A DNA stretch of 64,000 bases. Origin: Ascidiella aspersa. Lineage: Eukaryota. How positions within the stretch are numbered: the stretch's first letter is position 1; the number at the start of each line of letters is the position of its first letter. The notes under the pieces were generated by a model. It did not search any database and was not told the DNA's origin. It saw only the letters and a list, made by a program, of their open reading frames with translations. Positions 44,201 to 61,689 of this stretch are shown here, piece by piece. The stretch is taken from NCBI GenBank assembly GCA_963924565.1, contig OZ004610.1, positions 26,040,001 to 26,104,000 on the forward strand. Reading direction: 5' to 3'. A program made the translations under genes and the position numbers.

Positions 44201-47200
44201 TTATTATTCCGGCAATTTATGACGTCATCTTTGAGAATTGCTTGCTAACCGTGGTTGTCGCTTATCGAGAATAAATTTTAAGGTTATGCGGTAAAAAAAG
44301 TTTAAGAACCCCTGGTATAAGGAAATATAGAAACAGTGGTTCAGAAACGTTTTCATGGCAAGCGGTGCGTTGGAAAATTGACTTTATTTTTACCTTTTTC
44401 GATGACCACGAATCTGTAGGACTCCTCGCGGAAGCAGTTGCGCAGGAATCGCGCCTCGCTAAATTGGAAGCGGAGTCCAATGAAGTCCTTCTGCTCCTGC
44501 CATCCGATCTGCTGGAAGATGACCTGGCGGGAGTCGAGGCCCGACTCCGGGATGTTCAGGCACGCGTTCCACGTCTGTGAATAGCAGGAGGATAAGCACA
44601 ATACGAAAGCAGAGTTCGCTGTTGGAGGAGGTGTTAAGGAATAATTAAGGATGACGAAGGAGTATTGTGTGTGAAGGTATGAATACTAAGGAGAAGCTGA
44701 AACACTTTCGAATGTAAGTAGTCTCCCGCAGACAAATGTAAAAGAGGTAACACATTTTTTCGGCATTTTATACATGTTTGTTTTTGTACAGAAGCTGATG
44801 ATACCCAACCAAAAGGCGAAATATATATATCTGTAAAATTTTAAGAAACTGTTTCATGTTCTATTCCTGTTTTCATAAACAGTCTTAACATAGTACTAAA
44901 AGAAGCTAGGAGAGGAAATGATCTTTTAAATGTTTTTATTCAATCGACTAAGAAAATACAAAGAAAACTGTTCTACAGATCATTTTGTATATAAGATGGT
45001 ATACCGTAACCTAAATGTTAGCGCAGGCAAAGTGTGGTCACTGCTGGTTAAAACGAGTAGAGTCCCATTTAAAGGTTTCTCTTTAACAGTGTATATTTTC
45101 TACAGGATTCTACACGAAAACAAATCGAAAATGAAGCTACTATAGATATGGAAATGAAGCTACTATAGATATGGAAATGAAGCTATTATAGATTTTCAAC
45201 GTATTCTATCTAATGCAATTTCGGGAGTCTTACATTATGTTAACCAAATTAGTCCAGGTACGCGAATACATTAATATTTTGCGGCCGTAAACTTTTTTCG
45301 GCGGCCAACTTAAAAAAAATTGCGGATTTTTCCAGCACCAGTTTGGCGCCTTACCCTGTTGCAACAAATATATATATAATTTGTTTTGGTATTTTATGAG
45401 TTTCTTAACGCGGCTTTTACTTTATTCGGCAATTGTATTTACTTACGTCCAGTTGGGTAAGTGGGCAGTCGTGCGGAAAGGTCATTCTCAGTTGCCAATC
45501 GCCGGTGGGTTGAAGGCTGGGTAACTTCAGCTGGATCTCGGCCCCATTACCCCAGGTGTTTACCCACTTCACTTGAGGAATCATTCCTTGGCAAAAACAG
45601 TAAAACTTGGGTCTTTTCGTCCGGTTTAAGTTGTAACTAAACTCTTACAACAGCAAAACGATGGTTTTTAATGTTCTTGATGCGAACGGTGATCAACATG
45701 GAGCAAAAATACAAAACAAAATGGCAAACTAATTTTCGTCGTATGTATAAACGAAATTAAGTTAAATTCACTTAAAACTGAAGACAAAAGTGCCTTCCTA
45801 ACGAAAGGGAAGCATATGGGTGGTTGTAATAAGGGAATAAGGCACAGACAAAAGAATTGACGCACTACGACTCCAGTGCTAGAGTTATTGCTTTGTCGTT
45901 GGCGTGTTGCTTTGGGGTAAATTAAAACTAATTAGAGACCAAATTAGGCAAATTATCTTATCGCAGCTCCAGGTTGTTTAAAATCCGTTTGTGCTACGCG
46001 ACGGCAGTCAACAAACAAAAAATATGCTCCACGGATTTTAAGGCTTTACCGAAAGAATGAAAAAGTTTTCTACAAACATATAAATAAGGTGCCCAACCGC
46101 CCGGGAATCAAATTGGATTGCACGTATATTGTAGTTATACAGATAAACATTGTCTCGTTTTTGTTAGCGCATGAAGTTTTTATTCGTTTATAAATTTTCC
46201 GATAAGTATATGGAGTAATGATTGAACAGGCTACTTATTGAGTAAAGGTTTTTTAATGGAAAAGGGGTGGTTTTCGGACGGTTCTTAAAAACAATCTACT
46301 AAAACATGGCAATTCGTTTTTGCTGCCCATTTCGCCAAAATAATAGTGAAAAAATTAAAATTAAGTCCAAAAATCAAACGTTTTTAATTGTGCAACTCAC
46401 GATGCTCGCAGTTGATTCCGAACACGTTGTCGGGGCAGGTGCAGAGATAGTTGAATCCCTCTACGCTCGAGCACTGGCCGTTGTTCTGGCAGGGATGGGA
46501 CGAACAAGCTAGGATGTAACAAAAACAACAAAGTTCTTGAATAGTGTTTCACAGCCTGTGGAATTTTTATTGTAATTTCACTTAGCAACCAAGTAAAGGG
46601 TCGTGGACCGAAAATTTCGCATTTATTTCTGTTTAAAAGATACATACAAACACCTGCGTGTAAACTGTACAGCAAAAGTGATATAGCCGAAGTTTCAGTT
46701 TGAAACTTAATGTTTTTAGACATTCAGGCTTTATAATCAGAAAAAAATGTAGTTTAGTGTTTGTTCTTTTTGTTCTTTTCGTGACGGTAACTAATTGTAT
46801 ATGTTGAGCTTGTTTTATAAAGTTTTATGCTAACATATATATCAACAGTCAATGAAAGATAAATACACATACGTGCACAACAACTGCGAACTAGCCCTTT
46901 TTAAGTCGTTTTTTGATCAACGATAACGACTTACGTATATTGTTCACCGAAAGCGACAAACCAAATTAGTCGATCAATGATGACAAGGCAGGCTAAACGA
47001 CTCGGTTAGTGTGTCGAAGGCTTACGGTGAACATACACCAACAGCTTATACTGCGAGGTTGAGGAAGATATTTATATCAGAGAGCAATTAAAGGTATCCC
47101 TTGACAGGGCATATCTACTCTAATTGTATTAAACTTTGTTTAAAATAACAACTTTCATTTTAACGTGACGTTAATCGACCGAGATACCGATCAACCCCCC

Positions 47201-50200
47201 CAAAAACGGACCTGTTTTCTGTTTGACTTTCGAAACAAGCTTACCGTCCAATTTCGACACCACAGCTCCGGCGAAAACTTGGTTGGCGATTTCTTGTGGA
47301 TCCAGGGCGACAACGGATCCACCGGTTGCAATGCTTTCCAGAAAGAGAAGCCCTGCCGCCACGGATTGAAAGGCGGAGTTGTGAAGGATGTGAGGTTGAT
47401 TACCGACGAAGTTTTTCCTGCAAAGCAATTTCGATTTATTAATCTTTATGATGTCCCATTTGGGCGGTTGTTGTCCGTTTGCCCCAACGCTAAGTGCCAC
47501 TAAAAATCATTAAAGCAAACTTTTTCAGTGTTATTTGTATATTTATTTTATTTTAGTGATAGGCCTAATTTGTCAAATTTCCGATCCCTAGCAACCTTGT
47601 ATACATTAACTATTTGTTACATGGCTATAAAACTGATAACTTTACATTTGAAGCGCTATTGATACTTAATTAGCCTATGTCAACTAAATAATTAACGTAA
47701 CGTTTTCCCTATTTTCATTATGTTGTTTGTAGCCTATTGGTTTCTTAACTGGTCGATTCCCAATATTTTGCTCTACAACAAGACACCGAACTTTCAGGCT
47801 GAATAAAACTACCTTGAATTCAACAATTTCCCCACACTAAACTCATAATACAGGGAATTATGCTATAAAAGCATCATATAGCTATGGCTTTGGTGTTCAG
47901 TTTAACTGATCAAAACGCCCTCACTTTTTGAAATATTAAACCAAACTTGCAGTTAAAATTGCTTTCCGAATCACGAAATATACAGTTAAAAGAAAAAATG
48001 TGATTCCAAGAAAGGTGATTTCTACACTCTTCTTGTACAACATAGAAATTCAAAAGGAAAGCACACCTGGAATCGACCAAGTTTCCACTGGCGTCTGGTC
48101 CACCCACAAGTGCCCCGGTAAGTTCGTAAGTGTTGCTTCCAGGTGATCCAAAGAAACCCCAGCCGCATTGCAGGGGAGGCGAGGGGCAAGAGCTGTTGGA
48201 AATAAAGTGTTGTTTTACAGTCAACCTCTCATATTTGCATATTTAATGTCAAATCTTCGCTCTTAAGGGCTAGTAATCTTTATACTGTTTTCGGACAAAA
48301 TGTAAATCGGCCGTTTTAAGATACTTGAGAGACAATTTTTACGCAATTTTGACATAACCAGTCTCTTTATTCCTGGAATAAACTTTTATTTAGTTTTTTA
48401 GGTTCTCATTATTAGTCGCCCGTTTATTTCCAAGAGGAGATGCTATCTAATATTTTTTAGTAGACATGCAGTTGCTTGCGAACGTGTTACTTTAAACTTT
48501 TAATTCAATCGGTTTCGAAAAGAATATAATCCGCCTTAATAAATAAGAATAAATCCGACACATAAAAACGTTAGGTACCCGGTGGAAAAGATTTAAAAAA
48601 ATATTTATAAACAAGGCTAGCTATTTTTATTCGTTCATTTCAATTTAGAAGTCTTTTGATTTTTGTCTATCATAGTTATTCTGTCAAGGCCTGTTAATTT
48701 CACTTCTGACTTTATCTTTGCACACAGTTTATGTTTTATTGCCGAACGAACTTCATTGTAAGTAAATTGTTGAGTTAAAATTTATTTTTGAAAAACTCAA
48801 AGTCGGAACGGTTAAAGTTAGATTTAGGTTGCATATTTTAGCGCGACATCGAACGACTTATTTTAAACGTCCCGTTATTGTAAACTTTGTACGTCATGTC
48901 TAAAAATTGTCATGCGTTTCAGTAGGAACATTTTTCATCTTTCCAGTAAAACAATTATTCTACTCTTACCCCTGATCGACAGCCTTCACTGCTTATTTAA
49001 AACCCAAAATAAGACTGACATTACGTTTATTTGCGCTACTTTTTTGACCAGGCCCTCTATAGAACATCTTTCGTTGGTCATGGCGCCCTAGTAAAAAAAA
49101 CAGTTTCCCACGTATGCCTCGTACCTTCATAAAGAACAACACACATAAGGCTCCCTACCTGTCTCTGTCGTGCAGCCGCTTCGGGTAGTCCTTGCCGTAA
49201 CCGACCATGTAGCTAACACCTGTTCCCTTGCCTAGAGCTTCGGCAACTTGCTGCTTGGCCAGCTCCTGGTAAGCGGAAGTCTGTGCCGGGTCCAGGGTCT
49301 GCTCAGACGCCAGGGCGCAGAGGAAAGCAGTGTTTGCTGAAGGAAGCAATGGGCCGTGGTTTAAATCAGTGATTCACAAACTGTGTGCCGCGGCACAGTA
49401 GAGTGCCTCAAGTGATTGTTAAGTGTGCCGCAAAACTTTTTGTAAGTTTTAAAGTTTTTGTATGGCCAATAGGCATGCAATTACACGCAAATATTTTAGA
49501 CTTTAATCGCACTATCCTTACAAATTAGTAATATTGAGAGATTTACATATAGTTTGTGTGTTAAGTGCGATTGTAAAATTACTGTTAAAAGTGTGCCGCT
49601 AAATATGTAAGATTTATTGTGTCGTAAGCTAAAAAAGTTCAATTGCTTTGGTTTTGCAGCTACGGGTTAAGACAATATTACGACTATATCAGGGTTGCCA
49701 TATACTTTCACGAAGAACAATCAGAGACGTTAAAATACTTTTGAAATAAAAAATTATAGCTTTTCAAAGATTTAAAATTGGATCACTCGACATGTTGCTG
49801 TAAATTCGCAAAAAAAAATACATTTGAAGACAAGATAGCACAATTGCAATGATCAACAGACCATAAAATAACAAATAGTTTTACAAATTGATTTTCCAAC
49901 GACAAATGTTTTTTTTTCGTTTGATTCGGAGCGTTTACAAAACCTCGTATATGGAATTTGATAACTGCTTTATGACTTCTTACTTCACATATTTGTTCTA
50001 TCTCACGCAATTTAACAAAATATAAAAACGGCGTGTTACCAACGAAGATCATTTTGTTTTTGAGCTTCTTCATAGAGAGAAGGCCGTCCGGTGATTTGGG
50101 AGCAGAACGTGAACTCCATTGGTTGCAGAATTCCGCCACAGGGGTCATGTAGAGGTCATACTCGCCAGTGATTTCCGAGAGCAGCAACTATAAAAAAGTC

Positions 50201-53200
50201 TTCAATATGTAAGTTTGCTCTAAATTTATTATTTAACAATGACCAGATGAAATATACGATCCAACAAAATGCTTGTACTGTTAAGCTGGGAAAGAGCAAT
50301 GAATGTGTGTTGTAAAAAACGGTTTTATTCTTTAGGGCTATGTTATACGTAAGTTACACTAAGATGAAATAATTTCTGTGTAATGCGACTTTCTTTTCGA
50401 TTCCAGTCCGAATTTTACACAATCCTTAGGTAGTTTTTAAACTTGTTTTTACTTTCATTTTATTTTATGTTTTTTAACAGGTATTACCAAAGAGATAACG
50501 CCTTAGCTAATCGACGTTAACGAAATGCTAAATAATACTGTTATAAACAAGTTATTTTAAACAAATTCAAGTCCAAGTCAGGTGGTCATTTGCGAAATAG
50601 CTTAAGTCCCAGTCAAGTCATTTGCAAAATACCATTAGTCCCAGTCTAATATAGTCATTAGTTACGCATGTCAATTAGAAAAAAAAACAGCATTGGAATC
50701 AAAAATTAATATTAAACGTATTAAAATGGTAAACACTTTTCATTCTGACCAATATTTCGCACAGCAAACGCAAAAAAACGAAAAAACAGCAAGTTAACAA
50801 TTATTTTACTTAATTTAACTAAAATTTATTAATTAAAACACCATAACATACGATAAGTTATTCGCTGTAAATGATTATACGAAGTACTTAAGTCAAGTTA
50901 AGTCATATTACCAAAAAGAATTACCAAGTCAAGTCATCTGAAAAGAGTGACTTAAGTGCATTTAACTCATTAACTTTAAGAATTCTCAAAAGTCATTAAA
51001 ACAATGCTAAATATCGTATTGCATTTGCTTATGCGTTTCATTTGAACTTATCGTTTCATTGAAAATGCTATCCACCAAACTATATAAACCTGGATGGCCA
51101 AAATCTTGTTATCGTAGGTAAGGCCGGTGTCGGTGTTCTTCTTGTCCAAGCTGAACTCTTTGTACTTGGCGATCGCTTCGTCCAGGTAGGCCTGCTTATA
51201 GGTGGCCTTGTGGAGCCAGATAGCGGCCCACACCAGTTCGTCACCGTAATCCGTAGACCTGACAAAACAGTTACCTCTATACTTTAATTGCGAATGGCGA
51301 CAAAAAAACACCCGAGAAAATAAGATGAAAATACATCGAACAAGAATTTCGACGGCCAAGCGACATAATTGTGGCTCCTTATCCAATAATATTAGTATGT
51401 GGCCAAAAACGAATATGTTTCTCTAATTTAATAATTTTGTACTTTAAGGTATTTTTATTTGGTGTAATTTTTAATTTTTTTTAATTTATTTTTGACACTG
51501 GCAGTTAGGCAGGGGACTTTAAAGTATAACCACGTTTTAAATTTTATAATGATATTAACCATAAATGTAACTACAAAAAGTCTCCACAAAACTTTGTATA
51601 ACTTATTTAATTTTTTTATAAATATTGACGAGGTTGCTTGCTTTTGGATACAGGCCTAAAGAGAAAAATGCATTGTCTAGGTGGGTTTGGGCGGGTCTGC
51701 AGGGGCTCAACTAAACATTGTTGTAAACCGTTATCCTTGTGCAAACTATGTTCGCACCAAATGCTGCTCAAAGCTTCAATTTTTTAATTATTAAAAAAAG
51801 TATTTTATGTCAAACCCTGCCCTCTTTACTCACGGGTAAAATCCTGCTGCACCCGGGATCGAAAACCCGTCGTATCTTCCCCGGTTGAAGTCAGCGAACT
51901 GGTAAAGCTGCTCGGCGTGACGAATCAGCTCGGCCGAATACTCGGCAGCTGCAAAAAAACTTCAGTTCGTCTGGGTATTTAGCTGCAGCAAGTACAAACT
52001 ACGGCCCGCCAAGCAATATAATCCGGGCGGTGCATTTTCAATTAAACTATTTTAGACAAAAATTAACCCTAACATTATTTTATTGATTTCCGAATATTTC
52101 ATTGAATACATTACTCTTGAAAAGCACATTACCAGCTTGTCAAAACAAGGATATTTAAAAATTATTTTAAAATGAATCCCACACTTTTTCAAGATCAGTT
52201 TTTTGACACGGCCCGCCAAGACATTTTCTGTTTCTTGGGCGGCCCGCTGTCGAAAATAATTGCCCACCCCTGGTATAGAAAAATCACAAAACGTACAAGT
52301 GGGCTCGCTCAGCCTATAGATTTTTCCTAAAACGCCGCAGCATGCATTTCTTATCCAGTAGTTCACTTTTCGCTTGGCGAAATCGTTTTTCTTTATCGCT
52401 ATAAAGGGGACTCAAATAATTTTATAAATATGAAAATAAAAAAATACAATCAAACAATATTACTTTTACTTCCAAATCAGTATTCACACAACCACTTACT
52501 ATACATACGATGTAAAATGATTTAGTATCATCAAAGCTGATTGAGAAGGACTTGCTCTGGATAATTTAATTGACAGGCCAATTTTGATAGATGTTGCATG
52601 TTCTCTTAAAACTACCATATACAACCACCACTGTTTGAGTCGAGAAGACGACAGGGTAAGTTCGAAATTGGTTTTGGGCCCAGGCGACATTTCTATACCA
52701 GATTGCCAAATTGAAAAGAGTTTCAAAATCGATTCGCAAACAATAAATGAAAAAAATAAAATATAGCAAATTCTCTTATTCTTTAAAGGTCGGTGGAATA
52801 TATTTTTGCAAGGAAGCTTATAAATTTGTAAGTTTACGTGGTAAATCTAAAAAATCACTGGCCTTTGTCTGAAAAAAATAAAACATATTTTATTCCACTT
52901 ACAGAAGAAAGCTCTAGGCCAGTGTTTTTTAACCTTTTATGGGTTGCCCCCTCCCTTCCAAGGGTCCGCAACGCTTAGTGACCCCCTGTTTACGTTTTAG
53001 AAAAACACCACTTCTCAAAGAGAGCCTTTAAAGTTACAATCAAACTAAAAAAATGTTTGACTGGATAAATAATGAAAATTATATATGTTTGCCCACAGAT
53101 TGATTTCATCGGCGTCGAGAAACCCTGGTCCATATAGGGTCGTAAAATTGTCACCCACGTTTTAAAGTTAAAGAGATCTCAATGAACGTTTTTTGGCAAT

Positions 53201-56200
53201 GACGTAAGTTGCAAATTTCGACAAAGTCGCTTCAAATTGTGTTTACCCGGTTTAAACGTTTATCACGCAAATTAGCTAATTGATTGGCCTGGAAGTATAC
53301 TGGCTTGTAATGTCATATTGATTGGGTGATGTTACAGCGGCATAATAACACAATTAGGCCCAATTAAGGTAGCTTTAGATGTGCATTAGTGTTATCACCT
53401 GGGCGTATTACCTTAATCTGAAAAACACACTGGGCTTGACTAAGTAGAAAAATGGTGAAAAAACAAATGACGTAATGCAACAAAAAAATGCTTAACGGCA
53501 GGCTCGTATCCATATACGCATTTTGGCATGTAATGTGGCCTACATATTGAAGTATATTGCCTTTAAATTAAACCCAGGTACTTCCACATTCGCCGTCAAG
53601 TTAACCCAAGATAAACTTAAAAGAAAACAACGGTATCTTTAACCTTTATACACTTTGGGGTTTATGGCATTAAACAAGAGTTTTGCAAAGCAGATGCTTT
53701 GTCAGAAATCAGAAAAACACCACATTTGCACGTTTAAATTGAAATTCTGTTAAGTTTTAGGTTGGAGAATGGAGAGGTGTTATACTTTCAATACAAAAGC
53801 TACATATTATTTGGATGTTATTTATTCGCGCAAACCGTAAAAACGACTTTATATGATTTATTTTTTTTATTTTTGCGGGTGAGATGAGATGATATTTTTG
53901 CATTTACATAGTAAAAACAAAATACAGTTTAGGGGGGCATGTGGCCACTACCTGAATACGCCCCAGGGTTAAACATTTCTAACCTTGCACATAGATGTCA
54001 AACAAATTAAAATTAAGCGTACTTAGAAAGCAAACTAACCAACTGTGGAAAAAAGCAGGCCTGCCGCGGCCAGAGCTGCAGAGGTCTCGGCGGCCAGGTC
54101 CGACCCCGGTTCGTTGGTGGTCAGTTTGTACGCTGGTCTCCTCCAGTTTATGCTACCGCCGCTCTCCCAGTGCGAGTGGTCGATAGTTGGGTCGCCCACC
54201 TTCGAGGAAAAAAATCGTTGAAAAGGAAAAGAGTCGAAATTGAAAACGATTATGTGGACAAGGGTAGTGGTGAAAGCAAGCTGGAACGACGTTTCGGTAA
54301 AAAATTAAGTGTTCTTTATTACCAGGTTGTGTCGCTTTTTACCAAGCCATCAAGCCATCTTTTTGAAATTATTAAACTAATATTTCAGTTGCATATTTGA
54401 GATTAAACGGTAACCTCAGGTTTCCTAAAGTTATTTGTTTAAAACAGTGGTTCTCGAACTTTAAAAAAATAATTACGCAACGGCCCCTCAGCAACTTTTT
54501 AAATTGCTCACGGTCCCTCAAAAATTTACACAAAATAACATTTGTTTTCAATGGTATAAATGGGACGGGTAAACTTGCTTCTTTGCTTTCAGCTCGGCTA
54601 TGTTAACCTCTAACGAATCACTTTATTTGAGTAAAGCAATCACGAACAGTTTTAAAACCGTGACTGACCGTACAGCCCACAGTGTCATCGCAGCAAGCTG
54701 TGAAAACACAATTCTCATTAGCACAATGCAACACTATGACGTCACAATGGACAAATTTAACTCTAAGCGTACAATAACTTTAATGAACAACTATATTCAG
54801 CTTTGTTTTGAAAAGTTAGTTGCCTGAAAATTTTATTGCACAAAAGCGTCGTGTTGATTTTTTGTTCGCTGCTTTGCGGTCGCCGAAAATTGTCTCGCGG
54901 ACTCCAAAAGGACCGCGGACCCCAGTTTGAGAACCACTGGTTTAAAACGCCCCTTGATGCCGACAATAATTTTTTTAACGTTCGGGTAAGAAAATTCTTC
55001 TTCTTTAGACCCTCGTCACAATAAATCAGTGGTTTTCAACAGGGGTGCCGCGACAAGCTGTGTATACTCAATTCTAAAGCTTAGGGATGTCCTAAAATAT
55101 TTCAGAATCCTATAAAGAATTTGTCCCTCTTTTAAATTTTTCTTATCTTTTATAGAGAATTTGTATTTTATGTGACTTTCGTAAGTTAAGTCAAACGACT
55201 TTTCGTCGACAGAATGAGTCCAATAATTTTTCTTATTAATGTTTCCTATTGAAAAAAAACCCCAAATATTCAGGTTGCGAATCTGTCAAATAAATTTGCC
55301 TCGTTTTATGACTTTTTTACTATTACTTTTGCTGAATATGCGTATATCCAAAAAAGGTGTAAATATTTAGTATAGCCTATCGGATCTTTTCAACGTTTTG
55401 TGCGGATCTTCTAATGTAGTCTTGAAACAATAAACTTTATACAGCATTTTCATGAGGAAAAATCAAGCATAGAACGAGACTCTCAAATGCTAATCTTTGT
55501 AAGCGTTTGAGGATATCAGTAAGCGACGGAAAGCCCCAATTCGATGCTATTGTAAGACCTAAAGTCTAAAACAGGGCGCGGCAACCTACGGCCCGCGGGC
55601 CGGATTTGCCCCGCCAATGTAATTCATTCGGTCCGCCGCCTCTTTGTTGAACTAGATACGAGTCCATTTCAAATACTTTTTGACTATTTTAACTACGTTA
55701 AGTGCTAAAATTTTTCCCGCTTCGCGCGAATCATCTTTCTACGTCCGGATAGTTTACGTTTTGATGAGGTCTTTTGAACTAGATCAGCGCTTCGTTACCG
55801 TTAATGGTAAACGCATTCAAAAATATTGGACATCAATTTTTTAATTTTGTTTTTTCGGCAATGTTGTAGGTTATATTTACACAAATAAATCACCATAAAA
55901 ATAAAAGCGTGTCCAATATGTTTGGCTGTGGTGGATCATGGCAGAAATCATTTGAACACCCCTGGCCTACTAGGTTTTTAGCCCAGTTGTATTATACTTT
56001 TGTCCTCTTTTGTGCTAAATTGCCCTCTCTTTGGGCGATGAAAACAGGGTAGGCCTGATGTGAATAATAAAAGTTACCATAGAAGTTTACATCATCTAAG
56101 TCAGGTTAAGCTCAACGTACTTTTGCCTAATCATCACATTGCGTATATACAGGCCTAAACACACGTTAAGTAACTCCAAATGTTGGAGAACAACTCACCA

Positions 56201-59200
56201 TGCCGTAGAGCACATCATCTTGCGGGTGCGCCTTCATAAAGTAGTCCGTCCCCCATTTGATTGCCTTGTACAGGTTAATGGTCTCACCCGCCTGCTGGTA
56301 GCCCCCTGCGAATGCAAGTCCACCCCAGGCCAGCTGGGTGACCGCGAAAGCCATTGGAAAACCGAACTTGACGTAATCTCCACCTGATAAGTAATTAATT
56401 ACCGTTAAAAGCTTGTTTATTGTAAAATGTCAAAACTAGTAATGGATTGCCTATTCTTAGAACTGTTTCGAAGTATAGGAGCGTTTTCTGTCTGGGTTAA
56501 AAGCTTGTTTCTTTTAAAATGTGAAACTTGGTATTCATTAACTCTTTTTGAGGACTGGTTTAGGCTACGGAGCATTTTGCCTGGAGTCTTAAAATGTTTC
56601 AAATTTCCGCGACGGAGTGTTTTTATTTTGCATTAGGTGCCGACGTTTTCCGTTAATGCACAACGCATCGAGTTAAAACCAAACTTTCTGGTAAATTCAC
56701 AAATAAAACATGAATAACTCTCGGAATTTTTTATTTAACGATATGGGAAACCGTTTATATCGTTCATTTTCGTTCAACAATATCGTGCAGTGAAGTTGTT
56801 TAATGATAATTAACATATGGAGGTTTTAAGTGAGTATAGTTTTATTAATCATTAATTTAATTTTTATTTATTAAATTCGCCAGAAACTGTTTTATTGTTG
56901 CTAGACCGGGAAATGAATGAAGTGCTGTATGCTTTCAGCAACTGCCGTGCCGCGTAAGCGTAACGTAAATTTATCTTGGAAGAGAAAAAGTACGAACAAC
57001 GCGTAAGAAAAGAACTACAAAGAAGTTTATTGTTACAGCGATGGCGGTTGGTGATATAATACCTCTCTTTCAAAGTTCTTAGACGTGCGGCGCCATGGCT
57101 AAGCGGTTACAGCGCCTGTCTAGTAAACAGGAGATCCTGGGTTCGAATCCCAGTGGTGCCTTGCTTTTTCGACTTTTAAGAAAATTAGCTTGAAATTCTT
57201 CTTGTTACGTCTTGCAAACTTTTTTGACGATATTCTAAATTCCTACCACATGTTGTCCGGGGTGTTGAATTGCTAACATTTATACACAATGAGTCCAATA
57301 ACTTATTGTGGCTGTTGCAATTAAACGTAATGCTAAATATTTCGGCAAATATATTTAGAAAAAAATGAAGTACAGACACCCTTTGAAACGGCTAACTAAG
57401 TGGGTAATGGCTGGGGTTGAAACTTGTGTCGGGGTTGGAATTATTTAGGGAGTTAGTGGTGAAGGCAGGGTTGGGATTGGGTAAGAGGTTTGTTAAATCT
57501 TGTTTTAGTCGTTTAGTTTCTGTCTTTTACCGATTTAAACCTCATTTCGACTATAAGTATTACACCTATTTTGGTCTTTTTGGGGAATCGCGTTTTATTC
57601 TTACGATGGTGTCATTTCCCAGTGTTGTTAAAACAAGTTATTTTAAAATTACTTAAGTCGAAGTTAAGTCATTTGTAAAATAACCTGAGTCCAAGTCAAG
57701 ATATTTTGAATAAATTCAAGTCAAAGCATTATTATTAAAGCAGATCAAGTTTAAGGCCTTGTAATTCAAAATTTAATGTTGAACTTTAAATTTGGTAAAC
57801 TCGTCGAATAGGGGCAATAACTCAACTAAAAACAACAAAAACCCAACATACAACAAGTGAATTGTTTTATGTTAAGATAAGAACACCTGAAAGTGCTAAA
57901 TAAAGCTCCAATTATGGAAACTCAGACCGATAACAACTGCGTCCAACCTTTTATAAGTGATGATTGAAATTACTTTTCAGTCACATTAACTGAAGATGAT
58001 ACAAGCTCGTATCGAAAGGTCTTAATAATCAAGGTGATGTCTGTCTACTCGACATTTTTGGCTTTGCAATTCATTATCAAGTACGGTAACACATTTTTAT
58101 ATAAAAAAAAAGCTTAATGAAACTACCATATTTCAACCCACGTAATTTGTTCAAAAGACTTAAGTCAAGTCAAGTCATTTAAAAACGGAGCGGTGAAAAA
58201 GTGCACTTGTGAAAATCATTGACTTAAGTCATTACAACACTGTAAAATCATTGACTTTAGTTATTACAACACTGTTATTTTGGGTCTTTTTGCTGGAGTT
58301 CCTTTAAACCTCCCCAGGGATCCCAGTTCGAGACCTATGTTTAATAAGGTCACCTACCGATATAGTAGCCCCCGGTCAAATCGACTCCTTCTGCGCCTCC
58401 ATCGTACAAAGCCGAGTCCATTTTCCAGCTGATTCGATTGTCAGCTGGCATCTTGCCAGAACGCTGGGCCTCGAAGAAAAGCAAAGACAGCTTGACTACT
58501 TTTTTGTAGTCGGTGACGAATTCTGAAACGAATTGCGCCGAAGTTTAATCCTTGAGTCGACAGCTATACTCTTGAAAACATTTATATAGCCACAGTGCGC
58601 TATAATAACAAGTTGTGTCCTATTGAGTTGCACATGCCAATTTTCTAATGGGCGATGGGGTATTACAATTTTTGAATCATTTTCAAATAAATATTACTAT
58701 AGAGTGCAAACACTTTTGGATGTAAGGACAAATAAAATGTGATAAAAAAGATTCTTGATTTCGTATCAGATGATGTTAAGACTGTTTAAAAAACGTAGCA
58801 GGTGCATTTTTAATAAAGATTTATGTTTTGTTTTATACCTGTTTTTATAAACAGTTCTATCATCATATATTGTACGATATTTTTTTTAGCTAGAATTTAA
58901 TTCTTAAAGCTACAGTGTAGTGAGTGAAGTTTAGCTTTCAACTGTTTGTGGTACGTTGAGTCTTGAGCCCTGTATTCCAGCAATTTATGTAGCCTGCCTA
59001 ACTAAAATCATTGTGTTGACATAGCCTACCCATGTTTAAAAAAATTGCCGGATAAACAATTTTACAATTAGGTATATTGTGGCGGCAATCGATAAGGAAG
59101 AAAACGCAAATAAAAACAGCACCAACCGGGTTCGTTGTCGTTCGATCCGGATTGCTTGGGACCGAAGTTCTCGCCGTGCACTTGACCTTGAAAGGTCACG

Positions 59201-60714
59201 GTGAGCGAAGGCGGTCCGTTCTGGGCGTAGCCGAGCACGTGGAAGTCAAACGTCGGGCCGTGTATGTTGCCGTTCCACGGTTGGTTGGCGATGACGTAAT
59301 AGGTGAAGTCGGGCGCTACGTCAGAGACGCGACCCTTCCACATCTGAGAGGGAAAAGGTTGGTGGTTGTTTGATTATATACTTTTACGATATACGGCTTT
59401 TCCAATATCTATTTTTTAGCTCAGATAAAAATTGTTTTGCTGGGGGGACCATCAGGGTGGTCTGCATGAATTTTTAGAGCTGATAAACACGAATGGTATA
59501 AAACAAGTAGATATAAAATGTGAAACTGAAGTATAGTATAAATACTTTCAGTGCAAAAACGTTAATTTTATTTTAATTCTTATGTTTTGAAAAAATCATA
59601 ACCTTTTAAATAATTTACTAATGTTTCAATTGGGCCTTCATGGACCCTAAAACTGTTAACGTACCCCTAAGGGATCCATAGACCCCAGCCTAAGATTTCA
59701 GAAAATCATTCAAAAGATAGTACTTACCCATTCATAAATAATAGTGTACGGTTTGTTTTATGTAAGCAATGGTCACGTTTATCCCCCCTCTTGAATTGTA
59801 AACTTATATCTCACCTGAAAGCCTTTCACCGGCTTGTTGAACGTCACCGTCATTTTCCATCCGCCAGAGGTCGGGCTTCGAACCGGCACCTTTATGTCTC
59901 CCTCGAAACCACCGTTTGAAAATGTTCCTATACAAAAGAGGCAGTTAGCAAGTTTTCCTGACCTCAAATGGATTTAAACGCCATATTAGCCTTTTCAAAG
60001 TACCGTATATGACCTATATATACTATAGGCGTTATTCAAACGGTCGTTTTCTTAACTGCTTTATTTGTAAGAAAATATGTAGAAACTAAGAACGACTGGA
60101 AGGTCCCTAATATAGGGCGACAGTCCCGGGATGGCTGAGGTCGTGAGTTCGAACCTCACCGCCAGATATTTATTTCTATAGCCTTGCAATCCTGGTTAGG
60201 CCAACTGGTTTCGTTAAGGGTCTTTTTAAAACTGAGCATAAATTTTATTTTATACGATTAGTATCAAGTTGTTTGTCAATGCCCAAAAATCTCAAAATAA
60301 CTTTCAAATTTTATATTACTATTATTTTGGTAATTTTTGTTCGAAGTTTACAAATAACTTATTCTTCTAATATTAATTCGTAAATTGTTCGTGTCAAAGG
60401 ACAACTCAGCTCTATGACCAAAAGCAAAAGGCCTCATGTCTACCCCCAAATATTTATGTTTGCAATTTTGTTGTGCAAACGAAAATATTTCTTAGAAATT
60501 CCCGGTGGTTGTCAATCGTAAAACATTATTCTATTTTTTTCTAAATAATTGTAGCCTAGCAAATAGATTACTTACTTGAAACCGTCCATAGACTTGAAAA
60601 CGGGCCCGCGAATGCATTGACAGAGCTTGACGACAACGATAAAAATAAAAACACGTGTACGATTTTTTTCAACGAAAAAGCACCAACAATTTTTCGCCCT
60701 ATCGGCGTATGCAT
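12791..60714 (-). CDS. Giant secreted multidomain protein: SP-CBM2-GH9(pseudo-enzyme)-EGF-CBM2like-linker-CBM2like-2xFN3-21xEGF; 45 coding exons, about 2241 aa (short isoform)
   Basis: All 45 exons have AG/GT boundaries with compatible phases, summing to 6726 nt with no internal stop. An in-frame TAA lies just upstream of ATG 60714; the stop TGA is at 12791-12793. There is no stop between the GH9 C-terminus (exon 47245-47417, phase 1) and the EGF exon (46401-46508, phase 1). Single-transcript continuity is inferred. Confidence 0.8.
19493..24662 (-). CDS. Eight near-identical linker+EGF exons (24513-24662, 23801-23944, 23097-23264, 22318-22485, 21717-21884, 21062-21229, 20433-20594, 19493-19642)
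   Basis: Consensus ([13 protein letters not shown])[40 protein letters not shown]; all exons are phase 1-1 and open. Confidence 0.9.
20433..23944. repeat. Tandem exon+intron duplication array, six units with periods of 601-779 bp
   Basis: Introns as well as exons are alignable, e.g. GAATTTAAATTGAC and AAACCACGCTGTATAC in the left units, and GGGCAATGTGCTA..TTCTTATCTGTT in the right units. Confidence 0.9.
25182..25254 (+). tRNA. tRNA-Val-CAC: tRNA-Val (anticodon CAC)
   Basis: 73-nt metazoan tRNA-Val sequence GTTTTCGTAGTGTAGTGGTTATCACG..CTCACAC..GGTTCGAGCCCGGGCGGAAACA. One G-U pair in the acceptor stem; TTTT follows. Confidence 0.92.
25927..25999 (+). tRNA. tRNA-Val-AAC: tRNA-Val (anticodon AAC)
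   Basis: GTTTCCGTAGTGTAGTGG..CTAACAC..GGAAACA, 73 nt, followed by an oligo-T terminator. Confidence 0.95.
26676..27261. mobile_element. hAT-type MITE with GGTTC-rich subterminal repeats
   Basis: Perfect 15-bp TIR CAGGGAGTCGAACCG; near-identical 8-bp flanks CTAAAAGG / CTAAAAAG. Confidence 0.85.
27706..27778 (+). tRNA. tRNA-Val-AAC: tRNA-Val (anticodon AAC)
   Basis: Identical to the 25927 copy; oligo-T downstream. Confidence 0.95.
28713..28785 (+). tRNA. tRNA-Val-AAC: tRNA-Val (anticodon AAC)
   Basis: Identical to the 25927 copy; oligo-T downstream. Confidence 0.95.
29366..34596 (-). CDS. Eight one-per-exon EGF/cbEGF repeats (34486-34596, 33984-34106, 33397-33513, 32764-32886, 31865-31987, 30693-30815, 30135-30317, 29366-29494)
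   Basis: Seven exons carry the DEC..C.(N/D)....(F/Y/H).C.C pattern; 34486-34596 is a non-Ca type. All exons are phase 1-1. Confidence 0.9.
35232..38524 (-). CDS. Two fibronectin type III domains (exons 38439-38524, 37222-37465, 36273-36388, 35232-35388)
   Basis: First domain: [50 protein letters not shown]. Second: [42 protein letters not shown]. Each has the classic FN3 phase 1-0-1 exon pair. Confidence 0.85.
36152..36266. repeat. CCGATA/TATCGG-rich dispersed repeat (MITE remnant; also near 13045-13145, 35790-35840, 7767-7785, 885-965)
   Basis: Recurrent GTATCGGATCGG / CCGATACC motifs. Confidence 0.55.
39044..42049 (-). CDS. Third, divergent CBM2-like module plus linker (exons 41838-42049, 40597-40711, 39839-39981, 39044-39095)
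   Basis: [46 protein letters not shown]|ISWQ aligns closely with the second module; phases 1-0-1-0-1. Confidence 0.7.
41470..41765. mobile_element. hAT-type MITE (related copies near 51985-52272 and 55572-55964)
   Basis: Left end CAGGGGTGGGCAACCTACGGTCCGCGGGCC, right end AGGTTGCCCCCTCTG; TSD degraded. Confidence 0.6.
42705..43634 (-). CDS. Pro/Val/Thr/Gln-rich linker exons (43458-43634, 42705-42842)
   Basis: Two phase 1-1 exons with clean splice sites: [34 protein letters not shown].. and [46 protein letters not shown]. Confidence 0.72.
43252..43330. repeat. Fold-back inverted repeat
   Basis: Perfect 21-bp arms ACGTAGTAAGAATATCAAAGC (43252-43272) / GCTTTGATATTCTTACTACGT (43310-43330). Confidence 0.85.
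44394..45586 (-). CDS. Second, divergent CBM2-like module (exons 45447-45586, 44394-44574)
   Basis: [36 protein letters not shown]|[14 protein letters not shown]; CBM2-like Trp spacing; phases 1-0-1. Confidence 0.7.
45129..45193. repeat. 23-bp minisatellite, about 2.8 copies
   Basis: AAATGAAGCTACTATAGATATGG repeated. Confidence 0.85.
46401..46508 (-). CDS. EGF-like domain exon immediately after GH9
   Basis: [36 protein letters not shown]; six Cys; phase 1-1 exon. Confidence 0.9.
47245..58522 (-). CDS. Glycoside hydrolase family 9 domain, predicted catalytically inactive; exons 58358-58522, 56199-56383, 54040-54199, 51834-51948, 51090-51258, 50040-50187, 49159-49336, 48067-48192, 47245-47417
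   Basis: GH9 hallmarks appear in the correct order: [112 protein letters not shown]. Confidence 0.92.
54445..54939. mobile_element. hAT-type MITE with 8-bp TSD
   Basis: TIR CAGTGGTTCTC / GAGAACCACTG; perfect TSD GTTTAAAA on both sides. Confidence 0.85.
57089..57161 (+). tRNA. tRNA-Thr-AGT: tRNA-Thr (anticodon AGT)
   Basis: GGCGCCATGGCTAAGCGGTTACAGCGCCTGTCTAGTAAACAGGAGATCCTGGGTTCGAATCCCAGTGGTGCCT has an intact acceptor stem, anticodon arm CCTGT-CTAGTAA-ACAGG and T arm, followed by TTTTT. Confidence 0.93.
57620..58274. mobile_element. MITE family rich in GACTT/AAGTC repeats (other copies near 6290-6360, 14750-15090, 24012-24461, 34860-35135, 50540-50995)
   Basis: TIR CAGTGTTGT..ACAACACTG, with the right end tandemly duplicated. 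Internal AAGTCAAGTCATTT motifs are shared among the dispersed copies. Confidence 0.65.
59127..59927 (-). CDS. N-terminal CBM2 carbohydrate-binding module (exons 59815-59927, 59127-59343)
   Basis: [37 protein letters not shown]|[27 protein letters not shown] matches the CBM2 pattern (GF.g.i.v...GW.v.v.F...W...WNG). Confidence 0.8.
60115..60165 (+). mobile_element. tRNA-derived SINE-like head fragment (second copy about 29170-29222, minus strand)
   Basis: B-box-like GTGAGTTCGAACCTCAC. About 50 nt of clear similarity between the two dispersed copies; no cloverleaf. Confidence 0.5.
60576..60714 (-). CDS. Coding exon 1: start codon and probable signal peptide
   Basis: [46 protein letters not shown] has a basic N-region, a hydrophobic core and a VNA cleavage-like site. 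The GTAAGT donor is phase 1 and matches the next exon. Confidence 0.7.
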
Positions 60715-61689
60715 TTTTTCCACCGTTTTTTAATAACTTTTCGTTTTTGCAACGTAAATTATTATCGTTTTTTTTTTATCTGAAACAGAAAAACAACTAT
60801 AAATCTATTGCTTTATCAACCGACAACACCTAGCATTCTTCACCTAACTTATCCTGAAATGTTTAAAAACGTCTGATAATTTGTAAAGTCGTTTAAAACG
60901 ATCGTTTGCAACTTGATTATTACGCCTCTTGCTATAACTGCAAAACTCAACGTAAACTTCTAACCTCGAATACTATAAATGGCCGATAATTTCGAATCGC
61001 CTATACCGATGTCAAGTAGTATCGTTACTCGTCCAATGGAGTAATATCGCAGACACGATACCAAATTACTTTGTGCAATTTAGTTACGAATTGAAAATTT
61101 ACTCAGCGTTTTCCCCTTTAAAAGATATTTTAATAGTATAGATTTACTATTGAACCACACGTTTTTTAGCGCTATTGCAAATTTTGACATATCAATCACT
61201 ACGTTTTGCAAAAGGAAACACTACGTTTGCAAACTACCTGGACTGACAGTCTGAATTTTTCCCTACAAAAATTCGGTATACGCACAAAATATTCTCATTC
61301 CTATCGGAGATCGGTCTTTCGTATTGGTTACATTACTCTAAAACGACTACCACCCATTTTTTAAACTTTCACTGCGTGTTTATTTGAAACGACAATATGA
61401 ACAGGTCCGAAATTGTATTGCCCGAAACCTAACTTCAATCGGCTGAGCACAAGCAAAAAACGAACTTCTTTCGTTGAAATGCTTTCTCTCCACTCTCCCA
61501 CTGCGCAGTCACAACAGGCAAGCAACGCAATAAACGCTTCGCCCCGCGGAAATTTATTGAACTGTAAATCAGCGCTGTCGTTCGAATTGGCCGAGACGTT
61601 GGCCGTAGGAAGTGGAACATAAACACGACAACTCAGCACGATAAATTAGGCCCTGCCTAGTGGACTTGAGGCGATTTTGTGCGGTGTCG

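Follow-up and report, generated by a model that had tools for sequence, protein, structure and literature searches.

A remodelled cellulase-family (GH9) domain, probably non-hydrolytic and apparently maintained by selection, in a putative matrix protein of the tunicate Ascidiella aspersa

Introduction

A stretch of 64,000 nucleotides of the Ascidiella aspersa genome (contig OZ004610.1, positions 26,040,001 to 26,104,000; in the following, the window, in the numbering of which all coordinates are given unless a genome position is named) carries on its minus strand a gene with a domain of glycoside hydrolase family 9 (GH9), the family to which animal endoglucanases such as that of termites belong. 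The general-acid Glu of the family is replaced by Gln in this domain, the first Asp of the DAGD motif by Ile and much of the substrate-holding cleft by other residues, and the domain has nonetheless almost certainly been maintained by selection, as judged from comparison with an orthologue. The GH9-like domain is probably a pseudo-enzyme, i.e. a complete GH9 fold that does not hydrolyse cellulose and that would serve as a linker or organiser between cellulose and the matrix, within a protein that would be built largely of EGF and FN3 modules.

The GH9-like domain and its catalytic positions

The domain is encoded by nine exons, from position 58522 down to position 47245 (table 1), which together give 473 codons in an open frame devoid of stops and are separated by introns that all have GT-AG ends. 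Domain searches were run exon by exon; the Pfam profile PF00759 (Glyco_hydro_9) is matched by eight of the nine exons, which jointly cover profile positions 1-427 of 444, the strongest scores being those of exon 2 (expectation value, E, 1e-19) and exon 1 (E 3.3e-14). The position of exon 6 was set by the conserved intron positions and by its GLL...ANxAF flanks, that of exon 9 by the register test described below. An earlier note on this DNA, made from the letters alone, had held that frame and fold are intact over nine exons, and the present results agree with it. The alignment to the termite endoglucanase NtEgl (1KS8) and to T. fusca Cel9A (E4; 1JS4/4TF4), which the same note had proposed as a check, was obtained with exons 2, 7 and 8; it indicates a homologous barrel and allows the catalytic positions to be assigned. 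In the following, residue 412 of NtEgl is taken to be the general-acid position and residues 54 and 57 the two aspartates of DAGD, the presumed counterparts in Cel9A being Glu424, Asp55 and Asp58.

The first of the two aspartates is replaced by Ile, encoded by ATC at the end of exon 1. The joint across intron 1 reads GGG GGC TAC TAT ATC G^gtaggt ... ttatcag^GT GGA GAT TAC GTC AAG (the caret marking the exon ends), which on splicing gives GGYY-I-G-G-D-YVKF; only this donor/acceptor pair preserves the frame, and the intron, in phase 1, splits the motif just where it does in the active paralogues, with the same phase (GGW/YYD+G, then CN GGN GAT). The GD at the start of exon 2 aligns with residues 56-57 of NtEgl, with Ile at position 54 and Gly at position 55. 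Thus Asp57 is retained and the first aspartate is absent, while active GH9 enzymes have both.

The general-acid Glu is replaced by Gln, encoded by CAA at the start of exon 9. This exon opens with ctttgcag^G AAA AAC TTC GTC GGT AAT CAA and the motif continues as NQPHILHN, with no Glu at the place where active GH9 enzymes have their general acid. The Gln is assigned to position 412 because the end of exon 8 aligns with Asp403 of NtEgl, and the register is upheld by an ungapped comparison of exon 9 with 16 canonical GH9 proteins, which gives a score of 31.7 where shuffled sequences average -21.5 (z 6.2; none of 20,000 shuffles as good), the neighbouring registers all being negative. Paralogue F carries KNFVTNEVATDYNAGFQ at the 17-residue stretch aligned with the Gln region of the present gene (copy J in the following). 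Searched alone, exon 9 has no GH9 chain among its matches in the PDB, where one hit, to an unrelated protein at E 0.16, is put down to chance, and no candidate in a set of 5.8 billion proteins; it is too divergent for the GH9 hidden Markov model (HMM) as well.

Both replacements, which the earlier note had read from the letters at these same codons, are upheld by the splice joint and by the structural anchoring, and two of the findings that the note had named as grounds for giving up its reading, GAA at the Gln codon and a different exon, were looked for. In run X1, the DNA of a second individual, a contig spanning 47277-47614 departs from the window at five places; these are all intronic, none is in exon 9, and the Gln codon reads CAA, not GAA. 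A six-frame search of the whole window found no DAGD, no NE..DYN and no HMM match to the C-terminal columns, and therefore no alternative exon can restore either motif; alternative splicing as a route back to DAGD or NE was rejected on these grounds and on the lack of any other in-frame GT/AG pair at intron 1.

Remodelling of the rest of the cleft

The changes extend well beyond the catalytic residues. The WGxLRY loop, which we take to hold Trp313, Arg317 and Tyr318 of Cel9A (a numbering anchored by the alignment of exon 7), reads KLKNKMIFV at the junction of exons 6 and 7, as given by the alignment of paralogues and by the orthologue, and the substrate loop of active GH9 enzymes is missing. 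A stretch upstream of exon 7 that includes LNHGPLLPS was considered as the equivalent of WGxLRY and rejected: it is intronic, and the true acceptor of exon 7 (table 1) fits the phase and recurs in the orthologue. Furthermore, LxWD has become LTYD (Trp to Tyr) and DYxxNE has become NFVGNQ (Tyr to Phe), and both GRPE and HHR are altered, the latter in its middle His. Retained are the second Asp of DAGD, DH..W, FY, DE and the outer His and the Arg of HHR, along with the structural motifs GDxVKFGFP, DELxWAAxWL and GALVGGPD. In the presumed numbering of Cel9A, the equivalents of Asp58, His125, Trp128, Tyr206, His376 and Arg378 are kept, whereas those of Asp55, Glu424, Tyr420, Trp256, Trp313, Arg317 and Tyr318 are changed.

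Endoglucanase activity of the domain is very probably absent, because the acid, one water-positioning Asp and the sugar-holding loop are lost; this expectation draws on mutants of T. fusca Cel9A, in which single changes at catalytic residues reportedly come close to abolishing activity. The domain might still be an enzyme with a different reaction, acting on another glycan, by transglycosylation or through metal-dependent chemistry. Such a reaction would agree with the conservation of the cleft residues, which is tighter than that of the rest of the domain, with the retention of Asp57, of the His and Trp of DH..W and of the equivalents of His376 and Arg378, and with the gain of conserved His residues in QPHILHN and HDRD. 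It is nevertheless quite improbable in a domain that has no general acid, a hydrophobic Ile in place of Asp54 and another loop where the -1/+1 sugars would be held, the more so if one such mutation, as is said of Cel9A, leaves an enzyme nearly inactive. We know of no GH9 enzyme that is active without the Glu.

The orthologue and the evidence for selection

A search with exon 2 of 1.8 billion representative proteins led to one fragment 81% identical (P0001), from metagenome contigs of the Joint Genome Institute (JGI). The orthologous locus lies on contigs L035-L038, which carry exons 2-9 and the next EGF exon, with 61-82% identity per exon, and all eight introns agree with those of the present gene in position, phase and GT-AG ends; that these contigs come from the same species is excluded by the proportion of differing synonymous sites (pS 0.79). 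The orthologue's open reading frame in exon 9 lacks a start codon ahead of the motif and was therefore overlooked by gene callers. The four contigs come from different metagenome samples and all break about 3.3-3.4 kb upstream of exon 2, which points to a repeat within that species' intron 1.

For the ratio of replacement to synonymous divergence (dN/dS), the per-exon counts were summed over exons 2-9 (415 aligned codons). The synonymous sites are saturated (227 differences at 286 sites, pS 0.79), whereas the replacement sites differ at 173 of 959 (proportion pN 0.18, dN about 0.21). The longest identical run of the domain, 18 of 18 residues, surrounds the Gln, with seven silent and no replacement differences and with CAA in both species; a run of this length is by itself not rare (P about 0.2 under a uniform model) and is used here descriptively only. 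Also identical in the orthologue are KNKMIFV, RLHDRD and the G-G-D of IGGD, with silent changes that include AGA/CGT for Arg. The remodelled motifs are, in other words, the most conserved stretches of the domain and differ between the two genes by silent substitutions only.

Purifying selection after the loss of the catalytic residues is thus visible in three respects, namely the contrast of pS with pN, the splice sites and the silent-only motifs, and the domain is almost certainly selectively maintained. By the same evidence, it is under strong purifying selection that would date from before the two tunicate species diverged. The earlier note had proposed that the fold is kept rather than decaying, presumably for a non-catalytic role as lectin or scaffold, and had named conservation of the Gln in orthologues as a check; the comparison speaks for retention of the fold and for conservation of the Gln. 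A decaying pseudogene, i.e. a duplicated cellulase that drifts and of which the open frame is a leftover, might be thought of in view of the many active-site changes acquired at once, of the very long stem branch described below and of the lack of RNA reads on exons 4-9 in the run sampled, but it is barely credible, because neutral sequence at such divergence could not keep a frame open over 473 codons and leave 16 splice sites intact: synonymous sites are saturated while only 18% of the replacement sites differ, eight of eight introns keep position, phase and GT-AG ends in both species, and the changed motifs are invariant in protein while carrying silent substitutions.

The lineage extends to other assemblies. 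Three further exon-2 fragments (P0009, P0015 and P0034) are 65-69% identical to this copy and at most 54% to any paralogue, and the lineage is therefore widespread. The search with exon 7 returned nothing beyond the orthologue on L035-L038, and that with exon 1 returned canonical GGYYD fragments and fragments like other dead paralogues only, with no orthologue of this copy. Within the species, three of the four exonic single-nucleotide polymorphisms in two DNA runs are synonymous (codon positions read by hand; too few for a test).

The GH9 family in the genome

The present gene is one of about 13 GH9 loci in the genome (308.6 Mb), six of which are without catalytic residues (table 1), as read with a GH9 HMM (17 canonical proteins), split codons being read by hand. 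The other seven copies (A, B and D-H) keep the Glu and, where it was read, DAGD, and look active. In a GH9 tree built without the motif columns, copy J and its orthologue share a long stem (1.29 changes per site) that ends in short tips, while copy M lies inside the active A/E-H clade (support 99/98). With copy M in this place the dead copies cannot all go back to one loss, and at least two independent losses are therefore required. In other species, fragments that read GGYYI+G and GGYYV+C are similar to copies C and I, and these two dead lineages are therefore also old.

Table 1. Features of the GH9-like gene in the window, its sequence context, and the GH9 copies of the genome without catalytic residues (a caret marks an exon end).
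Feature	Position	Strand	Observations
Possible first exon (context)	60571..60729	-	ATG at 60714, hydrophobic signal-peptide-like stretch; putative
Two upstream stop-free stretches (context)	59071..59973	-	CBM2-like by W..GGF..I.V / WNG motifs; putative
GH9-like exon 1	58358..58522	-	phase 1 at both ends; ends in GGYY-I + G; PF00759 1-54, E 3.3e-14; GH9 HMM columns 9-60
Ile codon ATC	58359..58361	-	replaces first Asp of DAGD; motif formed by end of exon 1 and start of exon 2
GH9-like exon 2	56199..56383	-	second Asp of DAGD kept; ends in LYGM; PF00759 56-119, E 1e-19; 1KS8 56-115, E 2e-16; 82% identity with orthologue
GH9-like exon 3	54040..54199	-	DH..W kept; GRPE to ESGG; Pfam and GH9 HMM
GH9-like exon 4	51834..51948	-	Pfam, GH9 HMM, boundaries of orthologue
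GH9-like exon 5	51090..51258	-	Trp of LxWD to Tyr; Pfam, GH9 HMM, orthologue
GH9-like exon 6	50040..50187	-	end replaces WGxLRY loop; donor GTT G^gtaaca as in orthologue; alignment of paralogues
GH9-like exon 7	49159..49336	-	starts (A)NTAFLC; acceptor ccttcag^CA; HHR to HDR; aligns with Cel9A 1JS4 321-378
GH9-like exon 8	48067..48192	-	1KS8 residues 364-403, E 1e-8
GH9-like exon 9	47245..47417	-	acceptor ctttgcag; phase-1 end at gtaagc donor, no stop
Gln codon CAA	47396..47398	-	replaces general-acid Glu (position 412 of NtEgl); start of exon 9
Stop-free stretch with EGF-like module	46387..46548	-	next downstream exon; PF00008, E 1.4e-5; 71% identical at matching place in L037
Copy J (this gene)	window		DAGD to IGGD; NE to NQ
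Copy K	C4:26.92 Mb (L021-L022)		DAGD to DGAS; NE to NS
Copy L	C4:26.94 Mb (L022-L023)		DAGD to TGSS; NE to LH
Copy I	C4:7.6 Mb (L026)		DAGD to LSGD; NE to NG
Copy C	C1:12.56 Mb (L029-L030)		DAGD to VDGG; NE to NV
Copy M	C2:32.25 Mb (L024-L025)		DAGD to NGAG; last exon not found

Protein context and the cellulose-making host

Exon 9 has no stop and ends at a phase-1 donor, and the gene therefore continues downstream. There, on the same strand, an EGF exon is followed by CBM2-like stretches, FN3 pieces and about 30 calcium-binding EGF exons, Pfam confirming the EGF, FN3 and EGF_CA modules. The GH9-like domain is apparently one module of a large secreted matrix protein, secretion and a single transcript being what we infer from this arrangement.

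On the minus strand, at 35224-37522, the CBM2-like region is separated from the EGF array by the FN3-like exons (Pfam fn3, E about 1e-5), which probably belong to this one long gene as well. Within the EGF array, at least eight minus-strand exons at 19470-24700 encode nearly identical calcium-binding EGF modules, each after a similar 11-residue linker, and look like recent tandem exon duplications. Two segments of the introns of the GH9-like region, at 49210-49597 (intron 6) and 50568-50955 (intron 5), are high-copy, transposon-like repeats: in both DNA runs their word depth reaches thousands, and the RNA reads mentioned below fell nowhere else.

The genome also has a cellulose-synthase-like locus, which marks it as that of a tunicate. 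Its only match to PF13641 (GT2), at C5:19610505-19610882(+), and its only match to PF01341 (GH6), at C5:19613851-19614090(+), are both above the curated cut-off and lie 3 kb apart with GT2 upstream, which is the arrangement of the CesA-type tunicate cellulose synthase, where GT2 is followed by a GH6 part without a catalytic Asp (PMC10334666). The larvacean Oikopleura has an expanded set of GH9 genes, with expression in the epithelium that secretes its cellulose (bioRxiv 10.64898/2026.03.31.715263), which shows that GH9 genes of tunicates are already tied to the building of the matrix.

A candidate role and the readings weighed against it

In the proposed arrangement, the protein would consist, in this order, of a signal peptide, a CBM2-like module, the GH9-like domain, an EGF module, a further CBM2-like module, FN3 modules and many calcium-binding EGF modules. 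The GH9-like domain has lost the Glu of the general acid (now Gln) and one water-activating Asp (now Ile); several residues in contact with the sugars have gone as well, namely the Trp of LxWD and three residues of WGxLRY (Trp, Arg and Tyr). Flanked by CBM2-like modules, the dead cleft may act with them to hold a glucan chain or another component of the tunic without cutting it. A glucan held in this way would tie the animal's own cellulose to the EGF/FN3 rod. The choice of a glucan or other tunic component as the ligand rests on the cellulose-making host, the CBM2-like neighbours and the matrix-rod character of the remainder of the protein.

Alternatively, the domain could be a structural spacer or a module for protein-protein interaction only, with a cleft devoid of any ligand. 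Its setting among EGF and FN3 modules, which mediate protein contacts, would suit a spacer, as would the loss of several sugar-stacking aromatics. However, the former active-site loops need not then be the most conserved segments, and both the CBM2-like neighbours and a host that makes cellulose speak for a carbohydrate setting, which makes a mere spacer unlikely. Because the changed cleft residues are the best conserved, a function at the old cleft, and not as spacer alone, is the more natural expectation.

Several observations weigh against the reading as a non-hydrolytic linker of cellulose and matrix, and it is with these in mind that it is called probable and no more. Several of the sugar-stacking aromatics of the cleft are gone and binding of cellulose by the cleft is not a given; because of this loss, binding of cellulose or a related glycan by the GH9-like domain is proposed here as possible, with somewhat more doubt than confidence. 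The CBM2-like pieces on either side of the domain have no Pfam match at E <= 0.1, and the link between the GH9-like exons and the array of FN3 and calcium-binding EGF modules is one of strand, phase and the EGF exon of the orthologue only. The contigs of the orthologue cover no exon 1, so that the Ile position lies outside the comparison. Finally, the sole RNA-seq run of the species (about 6% sampled, 7.8 M reads) has no read on exons 4-9; the 13 reads that it placed here all lie on intronic repeats, with no splice joint among them.

A broader and rather doubtful extension of the linker reading is that tunicates turned part of their GH9 family (six of about 13 loci here, after at least two losses) into non-hydrolytic modules for the handling of cellulose, the invariant cleft of copy J, rich in His and Asp (DH, HDRD, QPHILHN), being a new site for a ligand or metal that would grip or order nascent cellulose chains and couple them to the EGF/FN3 rod.

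Comparison with known systems

The termite NtEgl and the earthworm EF-EG2 (3WC3) belong to the same fold family as the present domain. In contrast to these small secreted digestive enzymes, the domain described here is apparently embedded in a multi-domain matrix protein, with Ile and Gln at positions 54 and 412 and with the WGxLRY loop replaced.

Replacement of catalytic residues in glycosidases under selection is well known from other families. In the chitinase-like lectins of GH18 (e.g. YKL-40) and in the GH1 domains of Klotho, the acid/base residue is replaced (Glu to Gln or Leu type), the proteins are under selection and they act in binding or signalling; they differ from the present domain in family and in that ligand binding has been demonstrated there, whereas here it is suggested by the context. 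The GH6 domain of tunicate CesA is closer in setting, being likewise a cellulase-family domain without a catalytic Asp inside a larger protein that serves the animal's own cellulose (PMC10334666). It differs in belonging to another fold family, in its origin by horizontal transfer and in its fusion to a membrane synthase, whereas here a GH9 domain is apparently joined to an extracellular EGF/FN3 rod. The GH9 family of Oikopleura dioica has likewise expanded in a tunicate and is tied to the building of the matrix as well as to digestion; in contrast to copy J, its members are described as cellulases, and the part of the preprint cited (bioRxiv 10.64898/2026.03.31.715263) reports neither loss of catalytic residues nor fusion to EGF/FN3 modules. 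A literature search of partial coverage found no selected, catalytically dead GH9 domain described in any organism. Pseudo-glycosidases are, in conclusion, a known kind of protein, and what is new here is that the family is GH9, the animal a tunicate, the domain apparently fused to matrix modules and the gene one of six dead paralogues.

Significance

Counts of GH9 genes that take every member for a cellulase overstate the cellulolytic capacity of an animal. In tunicates, to our knowledge the sole cellulose-making animals, the ways in which cellulose fibrils are tied to cells and to matrix proteins are poorly understood. The GH9-like protein is a concrete candidate for the coupling of cellulose to matrix in the tunic and, if the broader and doubtful extension given above holds, its remodelled cleft would be a missing protein link in the organisation of tunic cellulose.

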